From sequence record KY555144.1: DNA of 64,000 nucleotides. One strand, given 5' to 3'. Positions 9,204 through 62,461 of this stretch are shown piece after piece. The position numbers and the translations under genes were made by a program. Under the pieces are notes generated by a model. That model saw only the letters and a list, made by a program, of their open reading frames with translations. It was not told where the DNA came from and did not search any database. The stretch's first letter is position 1. Each line of letters starts with the position of its first letter.

Positions 9204-9277
9204 GAAAAGGGCCTCCGGCGTTGTCGTCGAAGGCCCTTCTAGCGAGTCGGTGTCAGGCTGTCAACACATGTCAGCCA
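9204..9277 (-). promoter_or_regulatory. family promoter cassette with SD-occluding hairpin
   Basis: TGGCT-N5-GTG-TTGACA-17-TAGAAG-GGCCTTC-GACGACAAC-GCC-GGAGGCCCTTTT-CATG. Confidence 0.88.
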
Positions 9278-9280
9278 AGA

Positions 9281-9892
9281 TCAGGCGGCGTTCGTCACCA
9301 GGGTTTCCAGGCGATCAAAGCCCAGGTCGAGGCGGCCCCACATCGACGAGGGCGTATGCGGCTTGACCACCTCGGTGAACCGCGCGCGCTCCTTCAGATA
9401 CATGCGGGCCATGGGGATGTTCGGCTGGCCGGTCGCCGGGTCCTTGATCGAGGCCTCGACATTGGCGATCCGGTCGGCGAGCTTGAGGATGCAGGCCTTG
9501 GGGTGCTCGCCCAGCTTGCGATAGATGTCCTCGTTGCGGGCCTTGCGGTTGGGGCCGATGCCCGAGACCGCCCAGACTAGCGCCGCGACGTCCTCGCCGA
9601 ACTTTTCCTTGAGCATCTCCAGCCGCTGCTCGGGCGTCATGTCGAGATGGGTGTCCTCGATCACGTCGTGCAGCTTGGCGGCGGCCGTCCAGGTAAAGCC
9701 CAGGAAGCCGTAGTCATCGAGGATGCGCTCGACCTTCTGGAGATGGTAGAGATAGGGCTGGCCGGCGTACTGCTGGTCCCCGTGAGCGGCGATGGCGAAC
9801 TCCGTCGGGTCTTCCTGGCGCAGCGGCGCGCCCGGCGCCGTCGGGAGGCCGGTCAGGATGGAGGCGAGTTGGTCGAGCGAGGCGTCAGACAT
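9281..9892 (-). CDS. HD-domain hydrolase, small alarmone hydrolase/Mesh1-like
   Basis: AH..Q...G.PY..H, LHDVIEDT, FG..VA.LV, LKLADRIAN motifs; no synthetase domain. Confidence 0.85.
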   Translation of the reverse strand: MSDASLDQLASILTGLPTAPGAPLRQEDPTEFAIAAHGDQQYAGQPYLYHLQKVERILDDYGFLGFTWTAAAKLHDVIEDTHLDMTPEQRLEMLKEKFGEDVAALVWAVSGIGPNRKARNEDIYRKLGEHPKACILKLADRIANVEASIKDPATGQPNIPMARMYLKERARFTEVVKPHTPSSMWGRLDLGFDRLETLVTNAA

Positions 9893-10298
9893 GGGGCTTC
9901 TCGGAGATCGGGGTGAAGACTTCCAGGCCGTCGACGATCTGCATCAGATGCGTCGGCGGGTGGGCGGGATTGTAGCGGATGTAGCCGGCGAGGCCGCCGT
10001 CGATCATCGCCCCGCCCCGCTCCTTGTAGTCGTGCCGGAAGCGCGAGACCAGGAACGAACCGTCGGGCATCTCGATCGCCGAGAACTGGGCCTGTCGGAT
10101 CGAGGCCGCCGAGGTGATGTAGAGCCCGCCGCCCAGCGGATGGGTGAAGAGCCCGAAGTAGTTATCGTGGCCTTTCTCGCGGTCCGGCGTCTCGGTGTAG
10201 AAGACGTGGAACGGCCCCTCACGATCGGGGAGGTCGTAATAGCCGACGTACTTGGCGTTGTAGTGCTTTTCGGCCCCGGAGATGTTGATGCTGCTCAT
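9885..10298 (-). CDS. conserved phage hypothetical protein
   Basis: SRFRHDY...MIDGG motif; ATG 10298 overlaps the HNH stop. Confidence 0.8.
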   Translation of the reverse strand: MSSINISGAEKHYNAKYVGYYDLPDREGPFHVFYTETPDREKGHDNYFGLFTHPLGGGLYITSAASIRQAQFSAIEMPDGSFLVSRFRHDYKERGGAMIDGGLAGYIRYNPAHPPTHLMQIVDGLEVFTPISEKPHV

Positions 10299-10798
10299 GC
10301 GACCCTCAGGAATTCTCCCCAGGCGGGGAGGGCGTGCTTCAGATAGGCGGCGTGCGCCTCGTCCGGCGTCGTGTAGCACCCGAGATAGCGGTACACCCCG
10401 TTGATCGTGACCTGGGCCTGGAACGGCTTCGTCTTGCTCCGGCTCTTGGTCACACCCTTGGGAAGCGCGCCGACGTTCGGGCGGTTCACGAGGTTCTGGG
10501 ACCGCGTCGCCTTCCGGAGGTTCTTGATCCGATTGTTGCGCCGGTTCAAGTCCTTGTGGTCGACGTCGTGATCGGGCATCACCCCGTGATGGATCGCCCA
10601 GGCCACCTTGTGGGCGGCGATTTGAATTCGCCGGCCGCCATAGGAGACCTTCATCACTCGATAGCCGTCCTTGGTCACCGAGCCGCAGCGCTTGCGGGAC
10701 TTGGAGCCCCGCACGGTGATGGCGCCGGTGGCGGGATCGTACTTGTAGCGCGCCCGGAGGAAGTCGACCGGGATCGAAAACTCTGCATCCCCCGACAT
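10295..10798 (-). CDS. HNH homing endonuclease with AP2-like C-terminus
   Basis: AHKVAW...VDHKDLNRRNNRIKNLR..T..QN; FQAQV..NG..RYLG.Y.T..EAH.AY. Confidence 0.9.
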   Translation of the reverse strand: MSGDAEFSIPVDFLRARYKYDPATGAITVRGSKSRKRCGSVTKDGYRVMKVSYGGRRIQIAAHKVAWAIHHGVMPDHDVDHKDLNRRNNRIKNLRKATRSQNLVNRPNVGALPKGVTKSRSKTKPFQAQVTINGVYRYLGCYTTPDEAHAAYLKHALPAWGEFLRVA

Positions 10799-12375: not shown

Positions 12376-13608
12376 CTAGCCCTTCACGCAGAGGACTTGC
12401 TTGAGGGTGTGGACGATGTCCACGAGGTCCTTCTGGGCCTCCATGACCGCGTCGATGTCCTTGTAGGCCATCGGGATTTCGTCGATCACGCCAGCGTCCT
12501 TGCGGCACTCCACGCCCTCGGTGGCCTTGATCTGGTCCTCCAGGGTGAAGGTCGCCTTGGCCTGGGTCCGCGACATCGTCCGGCCCGCGCCGTGCGAGCA
12601 CGAGCAGAACGAGTCCGCATTGCCCTTGCCGCGCACGATGTAGGACTTGGCCCCCATCGAGCCGGGGATGATCCCGAACTGGTCCTTCTGCGCCGACACC
12701 GCGCCCTTGCGGGTCACGAAGACCCACTCGTCGAAGTGGAACTCCTTCTGGACGTAGTTGTGGTGGCAGTTCACCGCTTCCTTGTCCGTCTTGAACGGCG
12801 GCAGGCCCGACGCCCGCATGGCCTCCAGGACCCGGACCATCATCATCTCGCGGTTGATCCGCGCGAAGTCCTGGCCCCAGGCGACGGCTTCCACGTAGTC
12901 GTGGAACTCCGGCTCGCCTTCGCAGAGCCAAGCAAGGTCCTTGTCCAGCGGCTTGCGCCCGTCACGGCGCAGCATCATCTCCTTGGCCTTCTCGATGAAG
13001 ATGCGGCCGATGGTGTTGCCGACGCCGCGCGAGCCCGAGTGGAGCATCACCCAGACGCGCTGATCCTCGTCGAGGCAGACCTCGATGAAGTGGTTGCCGC
13101 CGCCCAGGGTGCCCAGTTGGACCACGCTGTTGGCGTTCTTCAGCGCCGGGTACTTCTCGCAGAGCTTGTCGAACCGCGCCTCCAGGCCCGAATCGACCCA
13201 CTTGCGCAGGATCGAGTTGGGGATGCCGCTGCGCCCGTTCCAGCCGCCCGACGGACCCGGCCCGCCGTGCGGGACGGCGTGCTCGATCAGCGAGCGAAGC
13301 TTGGACAGGCTGTCGGGGAGGTCCGACGCGGTCAGGCTGGTGCGGACCGCCATCATGCCGCAGCCGATGTCGACGCCGACGGCGGCCGGGATGATCGCGC
13401 CCTTGGTCGGGATCACCGAGCCCACGGTCGAGCCGATGCCCATGTGGACATCCGGCATCAGGGCGACATGCGAGTGAATGAAGGGCAGGGCCGCGAGGTT
13501 GTGGGCCTGGACCTGAGCCGGTTGCTCGAAGTTCACGCCGCGAACCCAGGCCTTGATCACGCCGCCATTCCAGCCGTTGATCTCTTCGTAATGGGTCTCG
13601 GCGGACAC
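12376..13608 (-). CDS. rtcB: RtcB RNA ligase
   Basis: MPDVH.G.G..VG, GVDIGCGM, QLGTLGGGNHFIE, HSGSRG, HHNY, RKGA, PGSMG, SCSHGAGR, DE.P.AYKDI. Confidence 0.97.
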   Translation of the reverse strand: MSAETHYEEINGWNGGVIKAWVRGVNFEQPAQVQAHNLAALPFIHSHVALMPDVHMGIGSTVGSVIPTKGAIIPAAVGVDIGCGMMAVRTSLTASDLPDSLSKLRSLIEHAVPHGGPGPSGGWNGRSGIPNSILRKWVDSGLEARFDKLCEKYPALKNANSVVQLGTLGGGNHFIEVCLDEDQRVWVMLHSGSRGVGNTIGRIFIEKAKEMMLRRDGRKPLDKDLAWLCEGEPEFHDYVEAVAWGQDFARINREMMMVRVLEAMRASGLPPFKTDKEAVNCHHNYVQKEFHFDEWVFVTRKGAVSAQKDQFGIIPGSMGAKSYIVRGKGNADSFCSCSHGAGRTMSRTQAKATFTLEDQIKATEGVECRKDAGVIDEIPMAYKDIDAVMEAQKDLVDIVHTLKQVLCVKG

Positions 13609-13674
13609 GGCGGGCTCCTTCTGTGGTGTCGTGATTTACGACTTTTGACCATGCTCCTCGGACGGTGTCAACAC
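13609..13674 (-). promoter_or_regulatory. family promoter cassette (rtcB)
   Basis: GTG-TTGACA (13671-13666), 18 nt, CAAAAG, then ACGACAC and GAAGGAG SD. Confidence 0.65.
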
Positions 13675-13867: not shown

Positions 13868-13906
13868 AAAACGAAAAACGCCGGCGAGGATGGCTCGCCG
13901 GCGTTT
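13868..13906 (-). terminator. intrinsic terminator after the SPFH gene
   Basis: 13-bp stem AAACGCCGGCGAG/CTCGCCGGCGTTT followed by TTCGTTTT on the minus strand. Confidence 0.88.
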
Positions 13907-15848: not shown

Positions 15849-16135
15849 CAGGTCGCGAGCCCGCGCTGCTTCAAGGCGACGATCTGCTCGATCTCCTTGA
15901 GGATGTGGTCCGACAGGCGGTCGGTCCGTTCCTTGATGCCGGCCGGGACGCCGATCTTGCACTGACCGATCTCGTGCAGGCGGTCGGAGACGGCCTTCAG
16001 GTCGATCAGGGTGTCGCTGATCAGCACCTCGGCGAGGCCCACGGCCTCGGTCTGGATGGCGGCGATCCGCTGGGCGGTGGTCTGCGCCGATTGGCCAGCG
16101 ACGAGGGCCAGGGCGGCGGTGTTCTTCTGGGTCAT
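15848..16135 (-). CDS. hypothetical helical protein
   Basis: First gene after a promoter cassette; SD AAGGAG. Confidence 0.85.
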   Translation of the reverse strand: MTQKNTAALALVAGQSAQTTAQRIAAIQTEAVGLAEVLISDTLIDLKAVSDRLHEIGQCKIGVPAGIKERTDRLSDHILKEIEQIVALKQRGLAT

Positions 16136-16196
16136 GGGGTCTCCTTCGTTGTCGTCGGGCGTGACTTCTAGTTGGGTTCCTGGAGGCTGTCAACAC
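16136..16196 (-). promoter_or_regulatory. family promoter cassette
   Basis: GTG-TTGACA (16193-16188), 17 nt, TAGAAG, 8 nt, GACGACAAC-GAAGGAG. Confidence 0.88.
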
Positions 16197-16763: not shown

Positions 16764-18181
16764 ATCAGCGCTCCTTGGCTCGGATCGGCCGGCGCGTAGA
16801 CGGCGCGGTTGATGGTGGTCTCCGGCTCGCCCGAGCGCTTGTTGGCGCCGTGACGCTTGATCGTGGCCCGGATGGCGTAGCGCTTGCCGGCCTCGGGGCG
16901 GTTCTTGCCGGTGTGGAAGTTCACCACCGCCGAGCCGTCGTCGCAGCGGATGGCCACGATGCAGGTCGTCTCGCCGAAGTCGTTGGTGTAGAGGGAGGTC
17001 CGCACGACCTCGCCCACGAAATCCACGCGCTGACCCTCGGCGGCGTCGAGGTGCTTGGCGGCCGGGCGCTGGGGAGCGTCGGCCTTCTTGCGGGCGTCCT
17101 CCTCGCGCTCCAGGGCGCGACCGACCGACAGGCCGACAGCGGCGACGATCACACCCATGCGCTTGACCAGGACAAAGTCCTCCTGAGCGAGCACCATCTT
17201 GATGTTCTCGTGGAACGGATTGCCCGGCTTCAGCGAGCGAATGTAGGCGGTGAAGCCCTCGCGGTCGAACTCCGGCTCGAAGCCCTTGTAGGAGTCGATG
17301 ATCTCCTGATTGCGCTTGCGCTCGTAGTCCGACAGACCATAGCCCCGGTTGCCGAACATCAGCAGGCCGACATGCTTGCGCGATTCCTCCTTGCTGTAGC
17401 CGCCGAACCGGCGAGCCACGCGGTAGGAGGTGCGCAGGAGTTCGCCCAGGTCGACGTACTCCTCGCCTCTGCGCCAGCCGCCCGGATCGCCCTTGAAGTT
17501 GTTCAGGTCATCCCAGAACGACAGCATGCGGACCGGGTCGGCGCCCAGGTAGGTCTTCAGGCACGAGGCCCCGATCATCTTGATCCCGTCGGCGGTCTCG
17601 CAGACGAAGGTATGCTTGCGCCGCTGGGCGACGCCGCAGTGGGCGCACTCGCCGGCGTGTACACGCATGGCTTCCACGACGTCGTTGGCGGTCTTGTCGA
17701 CCAGCTTGAGGTAGTGGCCCGTCTTTTCGGCGGCCTCGTAGATGCCCAGCACGCGGCCCTTCTCGCCGACCATCGGCGGGACCGACAGGGTGATCTCGAC
17801 GCGGCGGATCACCATGGCGTCCTCGCTCATATAGGGCGAGGGGAAGTCGACCACCTTGCGCTCCAGGACCGTCAGGGTCTGGCCAGCGTGGGCGGCGCGC
17901 TTTTGCAGCCGTCCCAGCAGGCGCATGAAGCGCTCCTCGACGGCGAACCCCATCATGAAGGTCAGGGTGGCTTGGCCCTCGCGCACGCCTTCCTGGGCGG
18001 CCCACATGGCGGCGCGGTGAGCTTCACGCTCCTTGTCGTCCTCGAAGATCGAGGCACCCTTGGCGGTCACGACCTCGACGCCGTCGACCATCACGCTGGC
18101 CTGATCGGCGACCGTCTGCGGACGCTCGCCGTAGGTTTCCAGCATGTAGTCCTGGTAGCTGCCTTCGAATTCGCCAAACAT
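16760..18181 (-). CDS. putative Zn-binding, OB-fold nucleic-acid-binding protein
   Basis: CAHCG...IGASC Cys cluster; C-terminal QRVDF.GEV...G.T..V..D.G.AVV.F...G..Y.I.ATIK.H OB-like pattern. Confidence 0.6.
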   Translation of the reverse strand: MFGEFEGSYQDYMLETYGERPQTVADQASVMVDGVEVVTAKGASIFEDDKEREAHRAAMWAAQEGVREGQATLTFMMGFAVEERFMRLLGRLQKRAAHAGQTLTVLERKVVDFPSPYMSEDAMVIRRVEITLSVPPMVGEKGRVLGIYEAAEKTGHYLKLVDKTANDVVEAMRVHAGECAHCGVAQRRKHTFVCETADGIKMIGASCLKTYLGADPVRMLSFWDDLNNFKGDPGGWRRGEEYVDLGELLRTSYRVARRFGGYSKEESRKHVGLLMFGNRGYGLSDYERKRNQEIIDSYKGFEPEFDREGFTAYIRSLKPGNPFHENIKMVLAQEDFVLVKRMGVIVAAVGLSVGRALEREEDARKKADAPQRPAAKHLDAAEGQRVDFVGEVVRTSLYTNDFGETTCIVAIRCDDGSAVVNFHTGKNRPEAGKRYAIRATIKRHGANKRSGEPETTINRAVYAPADPSQGALI

Positions 18182-18252
18182 GATCGGCTCCTCTCGCTGT
18201 CGTGAGGGAGCTTGTACGGGCTCACGCCGATGCTGTCAACACTCTAACGCCA
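18182..18252 (-). promoter_or_regulatory. family promoter cassette with SD-occluding hairpin
   Basis: TGGCG-N5-GTG-TTGACA-17-TACAAG; GCTCCCTC-ACGACAGC-GAG-A-GGAGC. Confidence 0.85.
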
Positions 18253-21121: not shown

Positions 21122-21480
21122 TGGTCCGACACCTTCGCCAGTTGCTTTTCCAGTTCGGCGCGCAGTTCAGCGTCGCTCAGGCCCAGGCGCGCCTTCATGA
21201 AGGCTACCGCCTCGGCGGCGGTCTCGAAGGAGCGGGTCTCGGCATCGGTGCTGTCGCGCAGGCCGAGGATTTCGATCACGCCCCAGAAAGTCGCCCAGGC
21301 GGAGGCGATCAAGGCCGCCACCGTGATGGCGAAGCCGAAGTTGAACTGGCGCGCGGCGCTCAGTTCCACCGCCTCGGCCGCCGTCCAGGCTACCGCGACC
21401 ATGCTCACCGAGGCGAGATGGAGCAGGGCGGCTCTGCGGGTGTGGGTCGGGCGGACTTCCAGGGTCATCTTGTCTTGCAC
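21118..21480 (-). CDS. membrane protein
   Basis: GTG after cassette SD GAGGAG; two hydrophobic segments. Confidence 0.75.
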   Translation of the reverse strand: MQDKMTLEVRPTHTRRAALLHLASVSMVAVAWTAAEAVELSAARQFNFGFAITVAALIASAWATFWGVIEILGLRDSTDAETRSFETAAEAVAFMKARLGLSDAELRAELEKQLAKVSDQ

Positions 21481-21553
21481 GAGGGTCTCCTCTGCGGTTG
21501 TCGTCACCCGCCTCTTAGGACAAGGCCGAAGCCTTGTCAACACATTCAAGCCA
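21481..21553 (-). promoter_or_regulatory. family promoter cassette
   Basis: TGGCT-N5-GTG-TTGACA-17-TAAGAG-6-GACGACAAC; spacer forms a GACAAGGC-TTCG-GCCTTGTC hairpin. Confidence 0.88.
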
Positions 21554-23265: not shown

Positions 23266-23435
23266 CGCAGTAGTTCTCCGTCGGCGATCCGGATGTCGCT
23301 CAGGGGATAGTCCTGGAAGAAGGCGCGCAGCCGCTGGCGCAGCATCCCCTCGACAGCCTCGGCGTTGTTCAGGGCCTCGGCGAGGTCTTCGAACATCTGG
23401 CGCTCATGGGCGCGTAATGGGCGGGTCTTCGGCAT
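23262..23435 (-). CDS. hypothetical protein (57 aa, not in ORF track)
   Basis: MPKTRPLRAHERQMFEDLAEAL...; follows cassette SD GGAGG; stop overlaps the next ATG. Confidence 0.8.
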   Translation of the reverse strand: MPKTRPLRAHERQMFEDLAEALNNAEAVEGMLRQRLRAFFQDYPLSDIRIADGELLR

Positions 23436-23503
23436 GGGACCTCCTGGTTGTCGTCGTGCGGCTTTTAGCCCCGATAGGTCAGGCTGTCAACACAGTGCAG
23501 CCA
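23436..23503 (-). promoter_or_regulatory. family promoter cassette
   Basis: TGGCT-N5-GTG-TTGACA-17-TAAAAG-6-GACGACAAC-CAGGAGG. Confidence 0.88.
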
Positions 23504-24311: not shown

Positions 24312-25329
24312 CGGCGACCTCCTCGGCCTCTTCCTCGCTCGGGGCGATCGTCGAGCCCGAATATTCCTGGAGGTGGTCGACTGCCTTCTGGGCCAGTGAC
24401 GCGGCGGTGAAGATGAAGCGCTTGTCGCCCTTCAGGACCTTCAGCCAGGAGGCGACATAGGAGGCGTGATCCTCACGGACTTCCGGGGTCAGCCCGAGAA
24501 TGGCGCAGAGGAAGGCCGAACCCAGTTCGGCGACCAGTTCCTCGGCGGCGTAGGCCTCGTCACCGAAGCGCTTGCCGAACTCGCGGTTCAGGCGGTCCTC
24601 GCGACCGGTCCAGTGGACGAACTCGTGGCCGAGGGTGGCGTAGTAGCTCTCCTCGTCGCGGAAGGCGTCGAACTGGGGCATCTGGATGAAGTCCAGGTGC
24701 GGCGAGAAGAAAGCGCGGTGACCGCCGTGACGCACCTCGGCGCCCGTGGCGGCGAAGAACTTCTCGACCGCCGCGTTGCGCTCCAGGACCCGCTTGGCTT
24801 CCTCGGCGGGCGTCGCCGGCGCCGGGGCGGGCTTCTGGTAGAAGCGCTCGGGCAGGCCGTCGATCTGCTCGACGTTGAACACCAGATAGGACTTCAGGAA
24901 CGGGATCATCCGCTCGACGTCCTTGCCGTTGGAGTCCTTCTCGGTCTTCTTGAACTTCGAGGCGTAGACGATCAGTTCGGACTTCTCGCCCTTGCGGACC
25001 TGACCACCCAGGTCCCTAGCTTGGTTGTAGGTCATCCAGGTCGGGTTGGAGTAGCCACGCTCCTGGGCGGCGGCCCACAGGAGGACCACGTTGATCCCGG
25101 TGTAGCGCTGGCCGGTCACCCGGCGGGGATAGATCGCCATGCCGGCCGACGCGCCGCCGGGAGCCGACCACGGCTTCAACCAGGGACGCACGCCAGCGTC
25201 GAGGGCGGCGATGATCTTGTCGGTGATCTTCTGATAGAGGTCGACCTTGACGGTTTCGGTCGAGGCCTTGCCGGTCTCCTTGGTGGAGCGCTTGGCGGGC
25301 TTCTTCTTGGCGGCGGTGGTCTTGGTCAT
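24298..25329 (-). CDS. ardC: ArdC-like ssDNA-binding antirestriction protein
   Basis: YQKITDKII..L..G..PW.KPW, Y.GIN..LLW, WMTYNQA..LGGQVRKGEK, VFNVEQIDG, YYATL.HE..HWTG...RL.R, YA.EELVAELGSAFL, ASYVASWL..LK.D. Confidence 0.92.
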   Translation of the reverse strand: MTKTTAAKKKPAKRSTKETGKASTETVKVDLYQKITDKIIAALDAGVRPWLKPWSAPGGASAGMAIYPRRVTGQRYTGINVVLLWAAAQERGYSNPTWMTYNQARDLGGQVRKGEKSELIVYASKFKKTEKDSNGKDVERMIPFLKSYLVFNVEQIDGLPERFYQKPAPAPATPAEEAKRVLERNAAVEKFFAATGAEVRHGGHRAFFSPHLDFIQMPQFDAFRDEESYYATLGHEFVHWTGREDRLNREFGKRFGDEAYAAEELVAELGSAFLCAILGLTPEVREDHASYVASWLKVLKGDKRFIFTAASLAQKAVDHLQEYSGSTIAPSEEEAEEVADAAA

Positions 25330-25388
25330 CAGGGCCTCCTCGTTGTCGTCGGAGGCCCTTCTATGCTGGCGTGAGAGTGTTGTCAACA
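25330..25388 (-). promoter_or_regulatory. family promoter cassette (near-identical subfamily)
   Basis: TTGACAACACTCTCACGCCAGCATAGAAGGGCCTCC-GACGACAACGA-GGAGGCCC-TGATG. Confidence 0.9.
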
Positions 25389-26337: not shown

Positions 26338-26459
26338 GACTTGAGGCTCTGGCAGGCGAACGTGACCTCGTCCATATCGTCGAGGGTGTACGACCGGTCG
26401 GTGATCGCATGGGCGTAGTCGAAGGTCGCCGCCTTGATCTCGTCGCGCGTGAAGGTCAC
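26334..26459 (-). CDS. small hypothetical protein (41 aa, not in ORF track)
   Basis: GTG after cassette SD GGGGAG; VTFTRDEIKAATFDYAHAITDRSYTLDDMDEVTFACQSLKS. Confidence 0.68.
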   Translation of the reverse strand: MTFTRDEIKAATFDYAHAITDRSYTLDDMDEVTFACQSLKS

Positions 26460-27190
26460 GGCTCTCCCCCTGGTGTCGTTTCAGCGCTTCTAGCCCTGCC
26501 AAGCAGAGCCGTCAACACATCAGCGCCACGCCAGACCCAGGATAGGCTCAGAACGAGGTCGCGGTCCTCATAGGCGGCGCTGCGCCCGGTGATCACCTTG
26601 ATCGCCGAGAGCGGGCCAAACCGCCAGAAGACGACCGTGCGCGAGTCGTTACGGCCCGGCAGATGCTCCAGCAGCACGCGGCGCTTGATCGCCAAATGTC
26701 GCTGCTCCCTGTGGAGGACGAGCGCGACCTTGCGCGTCGGGTCAGACCCGAACCACCGGCGCCAGTAGCCCGGATTGTCGATGTTCTCGAACAGCCGGCC
26801 GATCCGCTTGCTGACGGGGCGAAGCCCAGGCTCGCGCCGGCGCACGCTCAGCGGTGGGAAGGTGCAAGGCGGCCACTCCGGAAGCAGGCGCAGGCGCAGC
26901 CTCCGGAATTCCCACGCCGGCATGGCGTTGTCCTTGGTGTTGTTGCACGCCACGCAGGCCGCCGCCAGATTGCTCTCGTGGTTCGATCCGCCCTCGGCCC
27001 TAGCCTCCAGGTGCTCGATCGTCACCTCGTCGGGCTCCAGCTTGCCACCGCCCCGGCCGATCCGCCGGCGATAGGCCATCTGCCCTGTGCAATAGGTGCA
27101 GAGGCCACCCGCCTCCAGGAAGAGGCGGTGGCGGCGGTTCGGCGCGGCGGGCGGGAGCGGGTCCTGGACCAGCACCTCAGATGAGGACAT
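26456..27190 (-). CDS. HNH endonuclease
   Basis: CTYC...TIEHL.AR.EGGSN..SNL..AC..CNN.K. Confidence 0.85.
   Translation of the reverse strand: MSSSEVLVQDPLPPAAPNRRHRLFLEAGGLCTYCTGQMAYRRRIGRGGGKLEPDEVTIEHLEARAEGGSNHESNLAAACVACNNTKDNAMPAWEFRRLRLRLLPEWPPCTFPPLSVRRREPGLRPVSKRIGRLFENIDNPGYWRRWFGSDPTRKVALVLHREQRHLAIKRRVLLEHLPGRNDSRTVVFWRFGPLSAIKVITGRSAAYEDRDLVLSLSWVWRGADVLTALLGRARSAETTPGGEP
26460..26528 (-). promoter_or_regulatory. family promoter cassette (inside the 3' end of the HNH gene)
   Basis: TGGCG-N5-GTG-TTGACG-17-TAGAAG-7-ACGACAC. Confidence 0.8.
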
Positions 27191-29090: not shown

Positions 29091-29674
29091 GCCTCGATCT
29101 CCTCGAACCGTCCATCCATGAATTCGGCCTCGCGTCGACCCCACATCTGGCCCTCGGCGTCGAGGTAGGTCAGCAGGGTCTCGTCATCGAGCACCGGGGT
29201 CTCGCACTGGATGCGGATCGTCCCGACCAGGGCGTAGTCGCCGCCGCGCTTCTTGTGGCGGAAGCGGCGCATACCGCGCGGAAGCTCCGCCAGGAAGGCC
29301 TTCAGGGCGTCCGCCACCTTGGCCACGCCATGCGGGAAGTGCGAGCCCGGCCCGCGCACCCATTGATAGATTGTCGCCAGGGCGAAGCGCCCGGCGGCGA
29401 TCTCGCCCGTGGGGTCCTTGCGGATCATGTCCGGCGCGTAGTCTTCGAGGTAGTTCGTCCCGAGGATCGCCATGCAGCGGGCCTCCTCCACCGAGGTCGG
29501 CAGGCGCAGGTGATCGCGATCCAGGCGGTCGGCCTCGGCGAGCGACTTAATCACCCCGACCAGGATCGCCGCCTTCTCGGCGTGCCATTGCCGGCCGCCG
29601 GGCTCAGGGGCGCGCTCGGCGTGGTAGAGGTGGTAGTCCAGTATCTCGTGGACGTCTTCGCTCTGTCGGGACAT
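29087..29674 (-). CDS. hypothetical protein with C-terminal DUF1653-like domain
   Basis: FRHKKRGGDY...LLTY....G..W.R...EF.DGRF. Confidence 0.75.
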   Translation of the reverse strand: MSRQSEDVHEILDYHLYHAERAPEPGGRQWHAEKAAILVGVIKSLAEADRLDRDHLRLPTSVEEARCMAILGTNYLEDYAPDMIRKDPTGEIAAGRFALATIYQWVRGPGSHFPHGVAKVADALKAFLAELPRGMRRFRHKKRGGDYALVGTIRIQCETPVLDDETLLTYLDAEGQMWGRREAEFMDGRFEEIEA

Positions 29675-29735
29675 AGGGTTCCTTCCGTTGTCGTCACCCG
29701 CGACACTAGATGGTCGCGGGTGCGCGTGTCAACAC
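29675..29735 (-). promoter_or_regulatory. family promoter cassette
   Basis: GTG-TTGACA-18-TAGTGT-7-GACGACAAC-GGAAGGA. Confidence 0.82.
29695..29722. repeat. perfect 10-bp inverted repeat enclosing the -10 box
   Basis: CACCCGCGAC-N8-GTCGCGGGTG. Confidence 0.9.
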
Positions 29736-30893: not shown

Positions 30894-31186
30894 CAGTCGA
30901 CCTTCGGTTCGCGCTTGAAGCGGCCGTTCTCGTCGTAGCGGTCCGGGTTGGCGCCGGGGGCGTGGAAGCCCGCCATCGAGCCGATCTCCATGGCCGCGCG
31001 CTGCGCCGGCGTGACGCCCATGCGCTGGTTCATGGCGGTGACGGCGGCCTCGCCCTGGACCCCGTAGTCGGTCGCGTAGTAGCCGGTCTCATCCTTCTTC
31101 AGGATGACCGTCTCGCCCGTCTCGATGTTGATCGAGTAGCAGAGGTCGGGCAGGGCCGCGAGATTGATCTGGCGTTGGGTCAGCAT
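30893..31186 (-). CDS. conserved hypothetical protein
   Basis: LP..CYS...TGE.VILK..E.GYY...N..MGVT.AQ..AM..GSM.GF..PGA.P motif; first gene after a cassette. Confidence 0.85.
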   Translation of the reverse strand: MLTQRQINLAALPDLCYSINIETGETVILKKDETGYYATDYGVQGEAAVTAMNQRMGVTPAQRAAMEIGSMAGFHAPGANPDRYDENGRFKREPKVD

Positions 31187-31257
31187 GGAGGCCTCCTTGT
31201 TGTCGTCGAGGATGGCTTCTAGCCGGCCCAGGTCAGGTTGTCAACACTCGACAGCCA
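31187..31257 (-). promoter_or_regulatory. family promoter cassette
   Basis: TGGCT-N5-GTG-TTGACA-17-TAGAAG-8-GACGACAAC-AAGGAGG. Confidence 0.9.
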
Positions 31258-35509: not shown

Positions 35510-35582
35510 GCGGCCTCCTTCTGTCGTTGTGTCGACATAAGCTCTAGCCGTGGTTTTCCGGCCTGTCAACACACAACCGCCA
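35510..35582 (-). promoter_or_regulatory. family promoter cassette
   Basis: TGGCG-N5-GTG-TTGACA-17-TAGAGC-7-GACACAACGACA-GAAGGAGG. Confidence 0.85.
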
Positions 35583-35588
35583 AGGGTC

Positions 35589-38192: not shown

Positions 38193-38434
38193 GGCTCGAC
38201 CTTCCGGACAGTGTAGGATAATTCGTCGTGGACGCGACCGTCGAAACTAGCCTCGTAGCCGGGGCCGAGTTCGGCCAGGATGCGCGCCTCGATCTCGGCG
38301 AAGTCGATTTTCGCCATCGCCTGTTCGGCCGCCCGCATCTGCTGGAGGAAGCCGTCCTTGATCTGGCGCCCCGCCTCGGTGCGGATCGGGATGTTCTGGA
38401 TCGGCGGCTCGGATTTCGACAGACGCTCGCCCAT
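38189..38434 (-). CDS. hypothetical protein
   Basis: Coupled ORF; DFAEIEARILA motif. Confidence 0.72.
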   Translation of the reverse strand: MGERLSKSEPPIQNIPIRTEAGRQIKDGFLQQMRAAEQAMAKIDFAEIEARILAELGPGYEASFDGRVHDELSYTVRKVEP

Positions 38435-39169: not shown

Positions 39170-39219
39170 CTTCCCCTCGAATTTGGCGGCACCCTAGAGG
39201 AGCGTTCGAGTGTTGACAA
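39170..39219 (-). promoter_or_regulatory. leftward promoter at the strand switch
   Basis: TTGTCA (39219-39214), 17 nt, TAGGGT (39196-39191). Confidence 0.55.
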
Positions 39220-39253
39220 GCACCAATGTCGCTGGCTTTCGAGTGTTGACAAG
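39205..39253. repeat. 16-bp direct repeat, 33-bp period
   Basis: TTCGAGTGTTGACAAG at 39205-39220 and 39238-39253. Confidence 0.95.
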
Positions 39254-39304
39254 TCCGGTGCTCGTCTATAGGGGAGACCGGGACGACAACGAAAGGAGCC
39301 TGCC
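39233..39304 (+). promoter_or_regulatory. family promoter cassette (start of right arm)
   Basis: TGGCT-N5-GTG-TTGACA-17-TAGGGG-7-GACGACAAC-GAAAGGAG. Confidence 0.85.
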
Positions 39305-39613
39305 ATGCGCTATGTGCTCGACTATGCCGACGACCGGGACAAGCCGGTCTACACCGATTTCCAGGCCGGCGACCGCAAGGCGGCCATCGCCAAGGCCAAG
39401 CGCCTGCTCGCCAAGGCGATCAAGACCGTCGATTTCTCGCTCCACGGGGCCTACATCTTCGTCGATCCGACGGGCGTCGCCCGCGACGTCGACGACATGA
39501 TCCCGTTCGGGATGCTGAGCACGATGGCCTACGCCAGCATCATCACCCCGTCGATGATCTCGTTCGACGACCGCGACGCCAAGGCGGCGATCGCCGCGAG
39601 GCTCGTCCAATGA
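39305..39613 (+). CDS. hypothetical protein
   Basis: First gene of the right arm; SD AAGGAG. Confidence 0.85.
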   Translation: MRYVLDYADDRDKPVYTDFQAGDRKAAIAKAKRLLAKAIKTVDFSLHGAYIFVDPTGVARDVDDMIPFGMLSTMAYASIITPSMISFDDRDAKAAIAARLVQ

Positions 39614-41227: not shown

Positions 41228-41482
41228 ATGCTGACCAAGGACGAGATCACCTTCGCGGGCCTGATCAAGGCCATGGAGGACGCCCGACGCACCGCCAAGG
41301 CGGCGGGCGATCTCGTCAGCACGGCCGAGATCGCCCGCTGGTTCAAGGAACACGCGCCGATCATCCGGGAGGTCCGCGACAAGGCCGAGGCTGACGAATT
41401 CGACGCTGGCGCGAGAGTGTTGACAACCTCTGAGGAAGGGGCTAAAGACACCCTCGACGACAGCGAAAGGAGCCTGCCTTGA
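41228..41482 (+). CDS. hypothetical protein
   Basis: 84-aa ORF whose last ~25 codons are a promoter cassette. Confidence 0.72.
   Translation: MLTKDEITFAGLIKAMEDARRTAKAAGDLVSTAEIARWFKEHAPIIREVRDKAEADEFDAGARVLTTSEEGAKDTLDDSERSLP
41407..41478 (+). promoter_or_regulatory. family promoter cassette
   Basis: TGGCG-N5-GTG-TTGACA-17-TAAAGA-7-GACGACAGC-GAAAGGAG-TTG. Confidence 0.85.
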
Positions 41483-44532: not shown

Positions 44533-44540
44533 GTCTTTCC

Positions 44541-44611
44541 TGGCGTGAAAGTGTTGACAGCCTGAAGGGACTCCTCTACACCCACGCTCGACGACAACGA
44601 GAGGAGTTCCC
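44541..44611 (+). promoter_or_regulatory. family promoter cassette
   Basis: TGGCG-N5-GTG-TTGACA-17-TACACC-7-GACGACAAC-GAGAGGAG. Confidence 0.85.
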
Positions 44612-46381
44612 ATGGCCGAGACCATGACCCTGAGTTTCCGGATCGAAGGCGCCGCCCTGGTGGAGCGGGCGCGCGATCGTGTCATCGAAGGTAACTGGGA
44701 GCACGGCCTGCGCATCCTGGTCGAGGGCCTGCACGGCATGTCCTACGAACTCGCGATCGACATCCTGCTCGGCAAGCACACCCTGGGCGGCTGGTCCTCG
44801 GACCCCGAAGGCGTCTATCTCACCGACCAGGACCCGGAGGACGAGACTTTCAAGCGTTACAAGAAAACCCTCGACTACCAGTTCGCCGGCGTCTTCAAGC
44901 TGGAGGATGGCCGGATCATGCGTCCCTACGCCGTGGTCGACAGCTTCTCCAAGATCGACTTCGACTCCAGGGTCCGCTTCCTGCGGCTGGCCCAGGGCTC
45001 GGACCCGGTGTTCTCGCGCCCCAAGCGCTATCACGACACCCGCGCCGAGATCAACGGCGAGGAGATCGACTGGGCCTATCGCGCCCTGCACTACGCCGAC
45101 GAGCCGACCCAGGACATCGTCCGTCTGGTCCGTATGGAGGGCTTCCATCCCACGATCCGAGCGGCGGTCCTGTTCAAGGAAGTCCGCGACTATCCCAAGC
45201 TCCTACTTCCGAAGGTCGAGACCGACGCCCAGAAGGCCGTCGATGTGGCGATCAAGGCCCAGCGCGGCCTCTCCAAGCGCGGGCACGTCTACGAGTACGG
45301 CGCTGGTCAGGACTTCGACAAGGAGCACTACAAGACCACCATGGGGATCGATCAGGTCCCCACCGCCTGGACCGTGCGCAACCCGAAATACGTCGAGCCG
45401 AGCGTCGAGATCGCCCTGGCCGAGGCCAACAAGGTCTCCGCCGTCAAGGCGATCGAAGCCGCTGGCGGTTCGATGGATCATGCCGGCGCCATGAACCGGA
45501 TGGTCAAGGACGAGATGGACGGTGGCATGGACATCAGCACGGCCGTCGCCATGACCCAGGCCAAGATGGCGCTGCTGGGCGGCATGGCCGAGGACCCCGA
45601 GCAGCGCCTGCGGGCGATCAACGACGCCTACGCCGCCAAGTACGAGAAGGCCGAGGGCCGCAGCGTCGAGGAGTACCGCAAGGCCATCATCGCCCAAGCT
45701 GGCGATGACTTCTTCGATCTCGCGTACACGGATGTGGACGGCAAGGAGGTCGTCCTGAAGGTCCCGACCGCGCCGTTCGAGCAATGGGCTCTGTGGCGCA
45801 CCGCCGGCGCCCACCTCGCCAAGCCCTGGAAGCGGGTGACCTACACCGGCTTCAAGACGTTCGGCGATGATCCCTATCACACCGACTGGGTGCTGGGCGC
45901 GGGGCTCAACCCCGAGGACTGGCCGATCATCGAGGCCGACAACCCGCCGCTCCACAAGGCCGCCTGGGAAAAGCGCTTCCGGCTGGCCGAGGAGAAGCTG
46001 GGCGGCAACATGCGCGTCCTGCTCGGCAAGGGTTACGTGACCGGCAAGATCGTGATGCTCAAGCCGGGCGAGGCCCTGTCTCCGGGCGAGATCGGCGTGA
46101 TCCGCAACGCCGGCCCTGACTATGTCCAGGCCGCCCAGAGCGCCATCGAGCACAACTCCGCCTTGATCTGCGAGAACGGCGGCAGCGTCGCCCACCTCGT
46201 GGTCGAGTATCTGGACAAGCCCCTGCGTCTGGCGCGGATCGAGAACGCCCGCAAGATTTTCAAGGACGGCATGACCGTCTACCTCGACTTCGACAAGTCC
46301 ACGCGCGAGATCGGCAAGGGAAGCCTTGGCCCGAGCCCGGCGGACCTTGGACTCGACACGCAATGGGAGATTTTCGAATGA
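44612..46381 (+). CDS. protein with C-terminal PEP-utilising-enzyme phosphohistidine (swivel) domain
   Basis: G.VTGKI...GEI.VI....PDY...A....ALICENGGSVAHL.V........ENA.KIFKDGMTV.LD, matching the GG.T.H swivel-domain pattern; N-terminal ~465 aa unrecognised. Confidence 0.7.
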   Translation: MAETMTLSFRIEGAALVERARDRVIEGNWEHGLRILVEGLHGMSYELAIDILLGKHTLGGWSSDPEGVYLTDQDPEDETFKRYKKTLDYQFAGVFKLEDGRIMRPYAVVDSFSKIDFDSRVRFLRLAQGSDPVFSRPKRYHDTRAEINGEEIDWAYRALHYADEPTQDIVRLVRMEGFHPTIRAAVLFKEVRDYPKLLLPKVETDAQKAVDVAIKAQRGLSKRGHVYEYGAGQDFDKEHYKTTMGIDQVPTAWTVRNPKYVEPSVEIALAEANKVSAVKAIEAAGGSMDHAGAMNRMVKDEMDGGMDISTAVAMTQAKMALLGGMAEDPEQRLRAINDAYAAKYEKAEGRSVEEYRKAIIAQAGDDFFDLAYTDVDGKEVVLKVPTAPFEQWALWRTAGAHLAKPWKRVTYTGFKTFGDDPYHTDWVLGAGLNPEDWPIIEADNPPLHKAAWEKRFRLAEEKLGGNMRVLLGKGYVTGKIVMLKPGEALSPGEIGVIRNAGPDYVQAAQSAIEHNSALICENGGSVAHLVVEYLDKPLRLARIENARKIFKDGMTVYLDFDKSTREIGKGSLGPSPADLGLDTQWEIFE

Positions 46382-48338: not shown

Positions 48339-48397
48339 CGTTGACAACACTCTCGCGCCAACATAGAAGGGTCCTCGACGACAACGAGGAGGCTTCG
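48339..48397 (+). promoter_or_regulatory. family promoter cassette (near-identical subfamily)
   Basis: TTGACAACACTCTCGCGCCAACATAGAAGGGTCCTC-GACGACAAC-GAGGAGGCTTCG-ATG. Confidence 0.9.
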
Positions 48398-48781
48398 ATG
48401 AAGCTCGCGACCCAAGACCGCACCGACCCGCGCCTGAACGCGCGCTACCGTCTCGCCAAGGCGGTGTTCTACTATGGCGGCCCGCACGAGTACCCGATCC
48501 ACCTGAACGACTGGTGGAACGAGGTGACGCCGGCCGACGTCGAGGACCGCATCTCCGAACTCTGCCGCGAACTGTCCAAGCTGTCGGGCCAGACCCTGGC
48601 GCCGGCGACCTTCTACGAACGGATGAAGCTGGGCTTCGTCGACCTCCCGGAAGTGAAGGACGAGGACTTCGCCGCCCTGTCGGAGACGACCCGCAACAAC
48701 CTGCTCGCCATGCAGGACCGCTTCTCGGTCCACGGGAGCGGCTTCATGCTCTACTGGAACATCGTCAAAGAGGAGGCCTGA
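48398..48781 (+). CDS. hypothetical protein
   Basis: First gene after a cassette. Confidence 0.82.
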   Translation: MKLATQDRTDPRLNARYRLAKAVFYYGGPHEYPIHLNDWWNEVTPADVEDRISELCRELSKLSGQTLAPATFYERMKLGFVDLPEVKDEDFAALSETTRNNLLAMQDRFSVHGSGFMLYWNIVKEEA

Positions 48782-49843: not shown

Positions 49844-49911
49844 TGGCGTTCTTGTGTTGACAAGGCCGGCGGCGCTGGCCTAGAACGTCGTGGACGACAA
49901 CAGGAGGGACC
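49844..49911 (+). promoter_or_regulatory. family promoter cassette
   Basis: TGGCG-N5-GTG-TTGACA-18-TAGAAC-6-GACGACAAC-AGGGAGG. Confidence 0.87.
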
Positions 49912-50268
49912 ATGCCGCTCTACGACTTTCCGACCGGACCGACCACGATGGAGGACATCGAGGCGTTCGTCGCCGGCGCCCAGGCGGTGGTGACCGCCCA
50001 ACTGGCCAAGGCCTTTCCCGGCGTGTCCGCGCCGGTCCTGGAGATCGCGCCGGTTCACCCGAGCAGCCAGTTCGCCAAGATCGTCGCGGTCGACGCCAGT
50101 CAGCGCTCGGCCTGGGCGTTCGTCCGGCTGGAGAACGGTCTGATCTACAAGCCCTCGTCGTGGAAGGTGCCGGCCAAGCATGCGCGCGGCACGATCCACA
50201 CCGCCGCGCACGGCGCCGAGTACGTCGACTGGACCGGCCCGCGCTACGTCAAGGACCTGCGTCGATGA
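49912..50268 (+). CDS. conserved phage hypothetical protein
   Basis: S..AFV...G.IYKP.SWK.PAKHARG.I motif. Confidence 0.85.
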   Translation: MPLYDFPTGPTTMEDIEAFVAGAQAVVTAQLAKAFPGVSAPVLEIAPVHPSSQFAKIVAVDASQRSAWAFVRLENGLIYKPSSWKVPAKHARGTIHTAAHGAEYVDWTGPRYVKDLRR

Positions 50269-57179: not shown

Positions 57180-57186
57180 ATTTTGT

Positions 57187-57256
57187 TGGCGCGAGAACGT
57201 TGACAGCCTCGGCGTGGTGTCATAAAAGCCTCCTCGACGACAACGAGGAGGCCCCC
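57187..57256 (+). promoter_or_regulatory. family promoter cassette with perfect SD-occluding hairpin
   Basis: TGGCG-N5-ACG-TTGACA-17-TAAAAG; GCCTCCTC-GACGACAAC-GAGGAGGC. Confidence 0.9.
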
Positions 57257-57676
57257 ATGGCTTACGCAATTCCGGACCTGAGCACCTACACGTTCCACGA
57301 CCCCAAGGTCGAACGGTTCGCCAAGGCGATGATCTCGACGATCGAGACCGCCCAGACCATGCTCACGGCCTTCGCCAACGATCTCGCCGACAATCCTCTT
57401 CAGGCGTTCGAGCATAGCTACGGCGCCAAGATGGCCGCCGCCCACAGGGACGTCGCCAAGGGGCTGCTCAACGAGGTTCTCGACGCGCTGCTGCATGGTC
57501 AGGACAAGACCTGGGCCTACATCGGCCAGGACCTGCGCGAGCGGCTGATGTATCGCGTGATCTACGCGGCCTCGAACCCGCCGCGCTCGACCAACGCCGA
57601 GAGCAACGACATGGCCCGCTTCGTCCTGCGCGCCGAGGCCGACATGCTCGACCGCATGACCAAGAGCCGCTTCTGA
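57257..57676 (+). CDS. hypothetical helical protein
   Basis: First gene after a cassette. Confidence 0.85.
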   Translation: MAYAIPDLSTYTFHDPKVERFAKAMISTIETAQTMLTAFANDLADNPLQAFEHSYGAKMAAAHRDVAKGLLNEVLDALLHGQDKTWAYIGQDLRERLMYRVIYAASNPPRSTNAESNDMARFVLRAEADMLDRMTKSRF

Positions 57677-58589: not shown

Positions 58590-58657
58590 TGGCGTTTAAG
58601 TGTTGCCAAAGCCGAGGCACTCGGCTAGAACACGCCCGACGACAACGAGGAGGCCCC
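58590..58657 (+). promoter_or_regulatory. family promoter cassette (variant -35)
   Basis: TGGCG-N5-GTG-TTGCCA-17-TAGAAC-6-GACGACAAC-GAGGAGG. Confidence 0.85.
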
Positions 58658-58864
58658 ATGCCACACTTGAGCCAGCAGCCCTTCACCTTCGACTTCACCA
58701 GCGACGCCCTGCGCGCGGCGCTCGAAATCGAAAAGGGCGCCACCGAATCCTACCGCTACGAGACGATCTTCGTCTTCAACACCGAGCGCGAGATCATCGG
58801 GACCCAGGTCCGCGTCATGGACGAGGAGGGCTTTTTCGAGGCCTACGTGGCGGGGGAAGCCTGA
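58658..58864 (+). CDS. small acidic hypothetical protein
   Basis: First gene after a cassette. Confidence 0.8.
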   Translation: MPHLSQQPFTFDFTSDALRAALEIEKGATESYRYETIFVFNTEREIIGTQVRVMDEEGFFEAYVAGEA

Positions 58865-61932: not shown

Positions 61933-61951
61933 CGGAAGGACCTGAAAGACC

Positions 61952-62374
61952 ATGAGCACCGACCTCTTCGAGATCGCCGCGCGCGAGAAGTTCCGCTTCG
62001 AAAGCCCCAAGGGCCTCCTGGGCGTGGAAGAACTGTTCGACCTGCCGCTGACCAGCACCGTCGCCGGCAAGGCCAACCTGAACGATATCGCCGTCGACCT
62101 GTTCAAGCAGATCAAGGACCTCGACAACATCTCGTTCGTCACGCCCAAGAAGGTCGACCCCTCGATCGGCCAACGCCTGGACATCGTCAAGCGGGTGATC
62201 GAGATCAAGCAGGCCGAGAACGCGGCCAAGCTGAAGACCGCCCAGGACAAGGAGACCCTGCGCATCCTGGACGAGGCGATCGCCGCCAAGAAGTCCGAGA
62301 AGATCGCCGGCACCTCGCTGGAAGACCTCGAAGCCCAGCGCGCGGCCTTGCTCTCGGGCGGCGCCTCCGCCTAA
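61952..62374 (+). CDS. conserved phage hypothetical coiled-coil protein
   Basis: LFE.A.R.KFRF.S.KG.L.VE.LFDLPL...L.D.A; SD AAGGA. Confidence 0.85.
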   Translation: MSTDLFEIAAREKFRFESPKGLLGVEELFDLPLTSTVAGKANLNDIAVDLFKQIKDLDNISFVTPKKVDPSIGQRLDIVKRVIEIKQAENAAKLKTAQDKETLRILDEAIAAKKSEKIAGTSLEDLEAQRAALLSGGASA

Positions 62375-62400
62375 GCCTTCGGGCGGGCTGACATAGGCGC

Positions 62401-62461
62401 TTGACAACACTCTCGCGCCAACATAGAAGGGCCTCCGACGACAACGCCGGAGGCCCTTTTC
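62401..62461 (+). promoter_or_regulatory. family promoter cassette (near-identical subfamily; hairpin + U4)
   Basis: TTGACAACACTCTCGCGCCAACATAG-AAGGGCCTCC-GACGACAACGCC-GGAGGCCCTT-TTCATG. Confidence 0.9.

Follow-up and report, generated by a model that had tools for sequence, protein, structure and literature searches.

The window, a stretch of 64,000 nucleotides from record KY555144.1, belongs to the phiCbK-like Caulobacter phage Ccr5 (100% identity in a blastn comparison of 8 kb). Its first base is base 124001 of the Ccr5 genome, and it spans bases 124001-188000 with a GC content of 65%. The annotation places genes gp148c-gp225c on the minus and gp226-gp280 on the plus strand; most of the genes in the window overlap or abut and form operon-like runs with gaps of about 60-80 bp between them. 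These gaps are occupied by a promoter-leader cassette, the subject of this analysis, and by hairpins which in part of its copies would hide the Shine-Dalgarno sequence (SD) of the following gene in RNA that enters from the upstream operon. Ccr5 shares 94-96% identity with phiCbK, Swift, Karma and Magneto, 86% with BL57 and 77-79% with CcrBL10 and Rogue. The comparison set comprised homologous regions of phiCbK, Swift, BL57 and Rogue, fragments of Karma and CcrBL10 obtained by a pattern scan, and four small loci around gp240. A scan of IMG/VR with the cassette pattern retrieved mainly Karma, Rogue and CcrBL10, plus single, probably chance, matches in unrelated contigs.

The cassette is recognized by a 10-nt leader sequence, the tag GACGACAACG, which occurred 28 times in the window with at most one mismatch (6.5 expected) and was strictly co-oriented with the genes. 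Alignment of the flanks assigned about 17 of these 28 matches, together with a few degenerate ones, to one cassette type with about 20 copies and the layout (y)TGGC-N7-GTG-TTGACA-N17-TA(G/A)AA(G/C)-6 to 8 nt-GACGACAACG-(A)GGAGG-4 to 8 nt-ATG. In every copy, 29-31 nt separate the -35 element from the tag. The consensus for Caulobacter RpoD (sigma-73) consists of a -35 element TTGaCgS and a -10 element GCtANAWC, 10-19 bp apart, and the cassette elements fit this consensus, for example as TTGACAG-N14-GCTAGAAG at 9264-9236 (PMC8144410, PMC13004042). Exact matches to TTGAC-N15-18-CTANAW were found six times, with 0.11 expected. Counted from the -10 box TAGAAG, the G or A at the start of the tag is base 7 to 9 downstream, and it usually follows a pyrimidine. 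The geometry of the -35 and -10 elements thus fits a transcription start (+1) at the first bases of the tag. With an RpoD-type +1 near this first G or A, hairpin arms located upstream of the tag are predicted to be absent from locally started RNA. A tag-less cassette is consistent with this placement:

7233-7263 (-), TTGACA-N18-TAGTGT-cgcgaggc-ATG, cassette without leader in front of gp158c.

The ATG here takes the position of the tag start in other cassettes, as would be the case in a leaderless mRNA. An interpretation of the tag as -10 element of an extracytoplasmic function (ECF) type promoter was rejected, as the distance from -35 element to tag is 30 nt.

The original prediction had named six inverted repeats in these cassettes with the tag in the loop and the SD in the 3' arm, and all six were located. 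Their 5' arms were placed correctly as well: they lie in the 6-8 nt between -10 box and tag, in two copies also overlapping the last 3 nt of the -10 box. Five of the six cassettes also carry the labels 62399 (62401), 9266 (9204), 25388 (25330), 57198 (57187) and 18241 (18182); the labels in brackets and, for the sixth cassette, 48339 are used in the following.

62401..62464 (+), cassette 62401 before the open reading frame (ORF) 62462-62770, SD-occluding and terminator-like; -35 TTGACA 62401-06, -10 TAGAAG 62424-29, tag 62437-46, ATG 62462; 5' arm AAGGGCCTCC 62427-62436, 3' arm GGAGGCCCTT 62449-62458 with the SD, T-run 62457-60.
9201..9264 (-), cassette 9204 before gp162c, hairpin module as in 62401; -35 9264-59, -10 9241-36, tag 9228-19, ATG 9203-01; 5' arm AAGGGCCTTC 9238-9229, 3' arm GGAGGCCCTT 9216-9207, one G.U pair, T-run 9208-05.
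25327..25386 (-), cassette 25330 before gp195c (ArdC-like); tag 25350-41, ATG 25329; 5' arm (A)GGGCCTCC (AGGGCCTCC) 25359-25351, 3' arm GGAGGCCC(T) (GGAGGCCCT) 25339-25331.
57200..57259 (+), cassette 57187 before gp267; tag 57236-45, ATG 57257; 5' arm GCCTCCTC 57228-57235, 3' arm GAGGAGGC 57245-57252.
18179..18239 (-), cassette 18182 before gp180c, variant tag CACGACAGCG; ATG 18181; 5' arm GCTCCCTC 18211-18204, 3' arm GAGaGGAGC 18195-18187.
48341..48400 (+), cassette 48339 before gp246, weak stem; GAAGGGTCCTC 48366-48376 and GAGGAGGCTTC 48386-48396, pairing as GAAG..CCTC / GAGG..CTTC with an internal GG/GG mismatch.

Folding stability was expressed as z-score of the minimum free energy (MFE) against shuffled sequence for the segment from the -35 element to ATG+3, and a second, independent fold tool was applied in longer context. 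Five of the six hairpins were more stable than shuffled sequence. The sixth, 48339, did not fold above chance (z -1.05, 15% of the shuffles equally stable). The strongest structure was that of cassette 62401 (z -5.8), for which the read-through leader reached -31.9 kcal/mol (z -5.8) versus -4.6 kcal/mol (z +1.2) for the locally started leader. The difference between the two RNAs, which had been predicted, was also obtained for 9204 (z -3.7; read-through -26.8 kcal/mol, z -2.75, versus local -3.9), 25330 (z -3.7; -20.7 kcal/mol, z -2.8, versus -3.7) and 57187 (z -2.8; -29.9 kcal/mol, z -3.2, versus -5.9). The local leaders of these four cassettes were not more structured than shuffles, and often less. 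For 18182, the significance of the fold (z -2.5) was lost in the longer context (z -0.94).

The six hairpins are not independent of each other. A near-identical promoter module, ACACTCTC(G/A)CGCCA(A/G)CATAGAAG, is common to 25358-25386 (-), 48341-48369 (+) and 62401-62429 (+), and cassettes 9204 and 62401 share the whole hairpin, so that the six copies amount to about three independent hairpins. In Rogue and CcrBL10, a module of the ACACTCTC type replaces the promoter of the gp267 orthologue; together with the different promoter of gp195c in phiCbK, Swift and Karma this indicates that promoter modules move between genes. The 57187 stem was nevertheless retained with 7-8 bp in Rogue and CcrBL10 despite the different promoter module there. 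Seven phages have the 9204 hairpin, in which a position opposite G varies between C and U. The arms of 18182 were invariant in five phages and hence carry no information on co-variation. In 48339, the 5' arm varies among the phages (GGGTCCTC, CCGCCCTC, CCCTCCTC, GCCTTCTC) opposite a near-constant 3'-arm core GGAGGCTTC; the Rogue orthologue has a stem of 9 bp, and the predicted accessibility of the ribosome binding site (RBS) was low, 0.12-0.30, in all orthologues.

Two further cassettes, outside the six named beforehand, carry SD-occluding stems, and one of them, in front of gp240, is the best case of all:

44554..44614 (+), gp240 cassette (44552); tag 44590-99, ATG 44612; 5' arm GGGACTCCTCT 44567-77 in the promoter spacer, 3' arm AGAGGAGTTCCC 44600-11, from the SD up to the ATG.
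26457..26515 (-), gp199c cassette (26517), degenerate tag and GTG start; 5' arm ACGGCTCT 26512-05, overlapping the -35 element, 3' arm AGAGCCGT 26465-58, from the SD into the GTG start.

The gp240 read-through leader folds with -24.0 kcal/mol (z -2.95) versus -6.4 kcal/mol for the local one. Its stem of 11-17 bp covers SD and AUG across ten phages in two genera. The arms are UGGGAACUCCUCU/AGAGGAGUUCCCA in Swift and Magneto; a single bulge interrupts the stem of Ccr5, phiCbK and Karma, and that of BL57 and Ccr29 contains one or two mismatches. For the other genus, the arms are GUCGUCGGGGCCUCCUC/GAGGAGGCCCCGAUGAC in CcrBL10, with 17 bp including AUG, and GUCAUUGGGG... in RBC63, and the Rogue stem has 10+4 bp. 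A comparison of the two genera shows two A-U pairs changed on both sides, to G-C and C-G, and a spacer that is unrelated outside the arm. Within the second genus, G.U/A-U and C-G/U.G variants occur, which are tolerated only in sense-strand RNA. As the helix registers of the two clades are shifted by 1-2 nt in the MAFFT alignment, the energies of chimeric leaders were used instead of a column-wise pair count: cognate leaders folded with a mean of -28 kcal/mol versus -19 kcal/mol for cross-clade chimeras, a penalty of 9 kcal/mol. The 5' arm fills the promoter spacer, so every transcript from the gp240 promoter would lack it. On these comparative data, the gp240 cassette is decisive for the existence of a selected structure. 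The gp240 homologue of Brevundimonas phage Bajun was discarded as comparison because it overlaps its upstream gene and has no cassette. For gp199c (z -2.4), RBS accessibility was 0.20 in the read-through context versus 0.42 in the local one, and arms and accessibility were unchanged in the relatives. Given the predicted +1, the location of the 5' arm upstream of the start is robust for gp240 and gp199c, whose arms lie in the spacer or the -35 element. When the RNA 5' end was varied, the RBS opened from position -6 onward in 62401, -8 in 9204, -6 in 25330 and -13 in gp240.

How general the arrangement is was assessed in 19 cassettes. RBS accessibility (positions -14 to +3) was calculated from the partition function, including 120 nt of upstream sequence, with 116 internal genes as control. 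In about 8-9 of the 19 cassettes the SD was occluded only if sequence upstream of +1 was included. The accessibility values were bimodal, nine cassettes at 0.08-0.30 (six of them below the 10th percentile of internal genes) and seven at 0.49-0.65. Without the sequence upstream of +1, the gain in accessibility exceeded the 90th percentile of internal genes in 11/19 cassettes (Mann-Whitney p=1.3e-4); internal genes truncated at the equivalent distance gained 0.045 on average (n=116). For nine of the 19 promoter-leader regions, only 4% or fewer of the shuffles were equally stable. Pentamers complementary to the SD (CCTCC, CTCCT, TCCTC) were found between -35 element and tag in 7/19 cassettes versus 7.5% of sense-strand 30-mers (p=3e-4), or in 5/17 after collapsing the paralogous module (p=0.007). 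RNAduplex, applied to the 12 nt directly in front of the tag and to the segment from SD to ATG, gave strong pairing only in 62401, 25330, 9204 and 57187, moderate pairing in 31246, 18182 and 48339 and weak pairing in 11/19 cassettes. Cognate arms paired better than non-cognate ones in both tests in Ccr5 (p 0.03-0.05), phiCbK (0.02) and BL57 (0.001-0.004); these phage sets are related and not independent. In Swift the preference was found for the whole segment from -35 to tag (p 0.01) and amounted to p 0.16 for the last 12 nt, and in Rogue it was not significant (p 0.07 and 0.13). The accessibility class was conserved between Ccr5 and the orthologues in BL57, BL10 and Rogue (Spearman rho 0.81, n=35).

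In our interpretation, a gap combines a modular host-RpoD promoter with a short conserved leader of tag and SD, and in about 8-9 of the 19 cassettes the segment between -35 and +1 (discriminator, -10 flank or spacer) is complementary to the downstream SD, in gp240 also to the AUG. Polymerase arriving from the upstream operon would copy both arms and thereby generate a hairpin of 7-17 bp with the tag in its loop, which would block 30S binding in the long RNA; in the two copies with UUUU, the hairpin would probably also stop most read-through just before the ATG. RNA from the local promoter would start at or next to the tag and, devoid of the 5' arm, have an unusually unstructured, translatable leader. 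As an outcome, 60-80 bp would suffice to insulate each such operon from the one upstream. That read-through RNA exists is inferred from the fact that most of the 60-80 bp gaps have no separate terminators. We regard the chances that read-through-specific RBS occlusion of the type described in phage T4 operates in about 8-9 of the 19 Ccr5 cassettes as evenly balanced. By locus, the in silico case appears strong for gp240, reasonable for 62401, 9204, 25330 and 57187, and weak for 48339 and 18182.

Several results weigh against this reading. In the read-through context, 10-11/19 cassettes were open or had no SD occlusion, and as a class the cassettes were not less accessible than internal genes (p=0.33). 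The chimera test of 5' and 3' arms was negative in 12/14 orthologue groups (overall p=0.67); it was positive for gp240, with 49855 as possible second case. The stems of 57187, 18182 and 48339 opened only with a transcription start site (TSS) at most 2 nt upstream of the tag G. The long stem of gp195c was present only together with the 'ACACTCTC..CATAGAAG' promoter module (Ccr5, BL57); phiCbK, Swift and Karma have another promoter there and only CCTC/GAGG without long stem. Short stems may arise as a by-product, since 'CTC' is common right before the tag and by default complementary to GAG. Scans with E. coli rules for promoters and terminators made no call at three cassettes; we judge the promoter scan uninformative here, since it demands T at position 6 of the -10 box and the Caulobacter consensus has C. 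Finally, conserved hairpins without SD (29734, 21542 and 58601, described below) indicate that a structure specific to read-through RNA need not concern translation. The original prediction, that locally started RNA is translatable and read-through RNA silenced, is thus partly supported by the folds, the accessibility gain, the enrichment of anti-SD pentamers and the co-variation in gp240, and would apply to a subset of the cassettes only. Co-variation across related phages, which it had proposed as a check, was seen as compensatory changes in gp240, and co-evolution of the 5' and 3' parts in only 1-2 of 14 orthologue groups.

The hairpins may also act mainly as terminators or insulators of the upstream operon that are squeezed into the promoter-leader region, with an incidental overlap of the SD and a local promoter that escapes by starting inside the hairpin. 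The suggestion that the copies ending in CCCTTTT (9204, 62401) could be terminators is reasonable: their GC-rich stems of 9-13 bp are followed by TTTT, and TransTermHP-based GenBank annotations list predicted rho-independent terminators at the 62401 orthologue in phiCbK and Swift and at the 9204 orthologue in Swift. These two hairpins are among only about five convincing coding-strand sites in the window with hairpin and TTTT. Three others are classical intrinsic terminators with GC stems of 9-11 bp, loops of 3-5 nt and long T-tracts:

~1072-1104 (-), intrinsic terminator 1081.
~13868-13904 (-), intrinsic terminator 13877.
~35585-35619 (-), intrinsic terminator 35594.

They lie in larger gaps, each followed by a promoter, which indicates that ordinary terminators are used where space allows and speaks against a general terminator role of the cassette hairpins. 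A simple terminator scan called neither 9204 nor 62401. Their stem extends over 10-13 bp and the nominal loop of 12 nt contains a 2-bp helix closing an ACAA tetraloop, while the scan needs a loop of 3-8 nt; the U-tract of 4 U (TTTT, then C, then ATG) is below its 5-of-8 rule, and BL57 has TTTTT. Only 2 of about nine stems have a U-tract at all; the remaining SD-occluding stems have none, and after those of gp240, 57187, 25330, 18182 and gp199c the sequence continues with the start codon and a GC-rich coding region. The gp240 stem, moreover, tracks SD and AUG specifically. In favour of the terminator explanation, hairpins without SD are also located just upstream of +1. Taken together, we consider a predominant terminator function a possible, though somewhat unlikely, explanation.

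Rather doubtful, in our view, is the extended proposal that the cassette is a mobile, self-insulating expression module whose upstream half is selected as anti-SD or terminator arm for the SD context of any new insertion site and whose invariant tag, exposed in the loop of read-through RNA and at the 5' end of local RNA, is the recognition site of a phage or host factor such as a ribonuclease (RNase), an RNA-binding protein or a small RNA (sRNA). If it were true, this factor could give silenced read-through RNA the translatable 5' end of local RNA, or regulate the mRNAs of all cassettes together.

A role of the hairpins as intercistronic stability or processing elements, providing exonuclease protection of upstream mRNA segments as 3' stem-loops, or RNase cut sites, without any role in downstream translation, would agree with stable hairpins at various positions relative to +1, including the tetraloop hairpin 21538-21519, and with spacer hairpins that co-vary and have no U-tract (58601 and 29734 groups). 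It leaves unexplained the anti-SD enrichment and the fact that the gp240 stem follows changes of the SD/AUG flank; stems of 7-17 bp are also too short for typical RNase III substrates. We regard this role as improbable. Even less probable is a TSS or second promoter upstream of the 5' arms, by which the hairpin would be part of the gene's own mRNA and form a regulated translational switch with the tag loop as handle for a protein, an sRNA or an RNase. The tag is indeed always single-stranded in the loop and extremely conserved, and a conserved TGGC element and tandem -35 modules are located upstream. The tag is, however, equally conserved in hairpin-free cassettes, the -35/-10 geometry is fixed relative to it, in gp240 the 5' arm occupies the spacer of this very promoter, and Rfam returned no match at gathering score in the whole window. 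The absence of any function, that is, stems produced by the copying of one promoter/hairpin module and by a C/T-rich discriminator that happens to be complementary to a purine-rich SD in a 65% GC genome, would suit the paralogy of 3-4 of the six copies, the chance-level fold of 48339 and the mostly negative chimera test, and is the least probable of all in view of independent stems of different sequence (57187, 18182, gp199c, gp240), several controls with p from 1e-4 to 0.02, the compensatory changes in gp240 and an occluded or open class that is conserved across genera.

Hairpins that leave the SD free, with both arms upstream of +1 inside the promoter (spacer, -10 or discriminator), and cassettes with an open RBS, were found at the following places:

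29672..29732 (-), gp207c cassette (29734); stem CACCCGCGAC 29722-13 / GTCGCGGGTG 29704-29695, 10 bp.
21519-21538 (-), hairpin 21542, GACAAGGC-UUCG-GCCUUGUC with a GGC-UUCG-GCC tetraloop, overlapping the -35 element.
58610-58626 (+), hairpin 58601, AGCCGAG/CUCGGCU in Ccr5, AGCUGAUC/GAUCAGCU in Swift, AAGCC/GGCUU in BL57.
49863-49881 (+), hairpin 49855 within the promoter, SD free.
16133..16193 (-), gp177c cassette, no significant structure, representative of the open class.
13606-13671 (-), 23433-23490 (-), 35507-35569 (-), 39246-39307 (+), 49857-49914 (+) and 58603-58660 (+), other open cassettes.
21478-21540 (-), 31184-31244 (-) and 41420-41481 (+), intermediate cassettes.

In the open class, accessibility in the read-through context was 0.49-0.65 and the MFE z-score above -1.7. 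The gp207c hairpin (z -2.6) surrounds the -10 box and reaches as far as the first base of the tag without contact to the SD, and the RBS is open (0.62). In this group 96% of cells were paired, two pairs were compensated in Rogue (GCCGTGAC/GTCACGGC), and 9/500 shuffles were as good. The common denominator thus appears to be a hairpin that only read-through RNA can form, with SD hiding as one version of it; the hairpins that leave the SD free keep a terminator, insulator or stability role in consideration. An additional cassette of Rogue, L010 (+), 'aggctgcgcggcctcctgtagaag...ggaggccctcatg', lies outside the analysed orthologue groups and has an anti-SD arm in its spacer (GGCCTCC / GGAGGCC).

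Further observations concern the surroundings of the promoters. In 14 of about 20 cassettes a conserved yTGGC(G/T)N-N5 is located directly upstream of TGTTGACA, and the TGGC begins 11 nt before TGTTGACA:

9280-9267 (-), yTGGC element, example.
44537-44551 (+), yTGGC element, example.
57183-57197 (+), yTGGC element, example.

It may be a regulator or UP-like site; an assignment to a sigma-54 promoter was rejected on account of the wrong spacing. Tandem duplicate TGTTGACA modules, 33 bp apart, lie at 39211-39251 (+), at the start of the plus-strand arm, in the divergent region gp225c/gp226. Among the gene products of the phage are a GcrA-like protein (38434-38982) and an XRE/TgrL-like regulator (33872-34249). 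GANTC sites, the target of CcrM methylation, are present within the spacers of the 9204 cassette (9244-9248, -) and the gp240 cassette (44569-44573, +) and could be relevant to the GcrA-like protein. In Rogue, 12 of 14 exact-pattern cassettes lie within 125-196 kb, so the cassette is confined to that genome region. Cassette and SD favour ATG 62462 as start of gp277, which is annotated at 62579 in KY555144 and in the longer form in Swift; they favour ATG 23435 over the annotated position 23396 as start of gp191c. The start codons of both genes are likely mis-annotated in KY555144. Among the genes downstream of cassettes, Pfam identified only ArdC for gp195c (ArdcN and MPTase-PolyVal) and DUF7717 for gp250; the occluded class is therefore without functional theme. 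A tRNA scan of the window found nothing. Neither the cassette nor its tag or hairpins are described in three papers, those on the phiCbK genome (PMC3556154), on CtrA and phage (PMC9437464) and on XRE/TgrL (PMC10688885). A full-text literature search with the tag sequence returned only unrelated primers, and a description of the cassette or its hairpins was not found in the searchable literature.

The region packs more than 130 mostly unknown genes into operons that are 60-80 bp apart. A promoter nested in a silencing or stopping hairpin, if it acts as proposed, would explain how these operons are kept independent in little space. It would also extend a mechanism documented so far in T4-type phages to an alphaproteobacterial phage with host RpoD-type promoters. 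In practical terms, the cassette predicts TSSs by means of the tag, would correct two start-codon annotations and would supply compact insulator parts for the engineering of Caulobacter.

In T4, longer early transcripts keep SD and/or AUG of genes e, soc, 49 and I-TevI sequestered; late promoters lie inside the region coding for the helix's 5' strand, so that late transcripts are translated, with an approximately 100-fold difference for gene e (PMC3014915). This precedent had been cited correctly in the original prediction. The Ccr5 cassettes resemble it in that SD and/or AUG are part of a helix, the 5' strand is encoded upstream of or overlapping the predicted proximal promoter, so that promoter-proximal transcripts would lack it, and the arrangement is kept in related phages. 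A stable helix with SD and/or start codon in the long RNA was found for 62401, 9204, gp240, 57187, 25330 and gp199c, and in weak form for 48339 and 18182; conservation of structure among related phages was found for gp240, 9204 and the accessibility class, most other groups being negative in the chimera test. Ccr5 is probably a further case of the T4 kind; in two copies the hairpin would in addition act as terminator. It differs from T4 in the proximal promoter, which is of the host RpoD type, early/middle, and not a gp55 late promoter, in the alphaproteobacterial host, and in the repetition of the arrangement at about eight operon heads as a standardized cassette with a common 10-nt leader tag. 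The early-versus-late rationale of T4 is not evident in Ccr5, and two Ccr5 copies are also terminator-like. Intrinsic terminators share with 9204 and 62401 the GC-rich stem followed by UUUU; in these two cassettes, however, the hairpin holds the SD of the next gene, the 4-nt U-tract abuts the ATG, and the predicted +1 of a nested promoter lies inside the hairpin. The sib element of phage lambda is a 3' RNase III site that governs decay of the int mRNA. As proposed for Ccr5, of two overlapping transcripts only the longer one forms the structure, which sets the fate of that transcript, whereas the Ccr5 hairpin is a 5', RBS-occluding one. The intercistronic hairpins of the Rhodobacter puf operon and the T7 RNase III sites next to promoters are likewise stable stem-loops in short gaps between co-transcribed genes, often beside promoters. 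These elements are present in all crossing transcripts and act on decay or processing, whereas the 5' arm of the Ccr5 hairpins is predicted to be missing from the local RNA and the 3' arm is the RBS itself.

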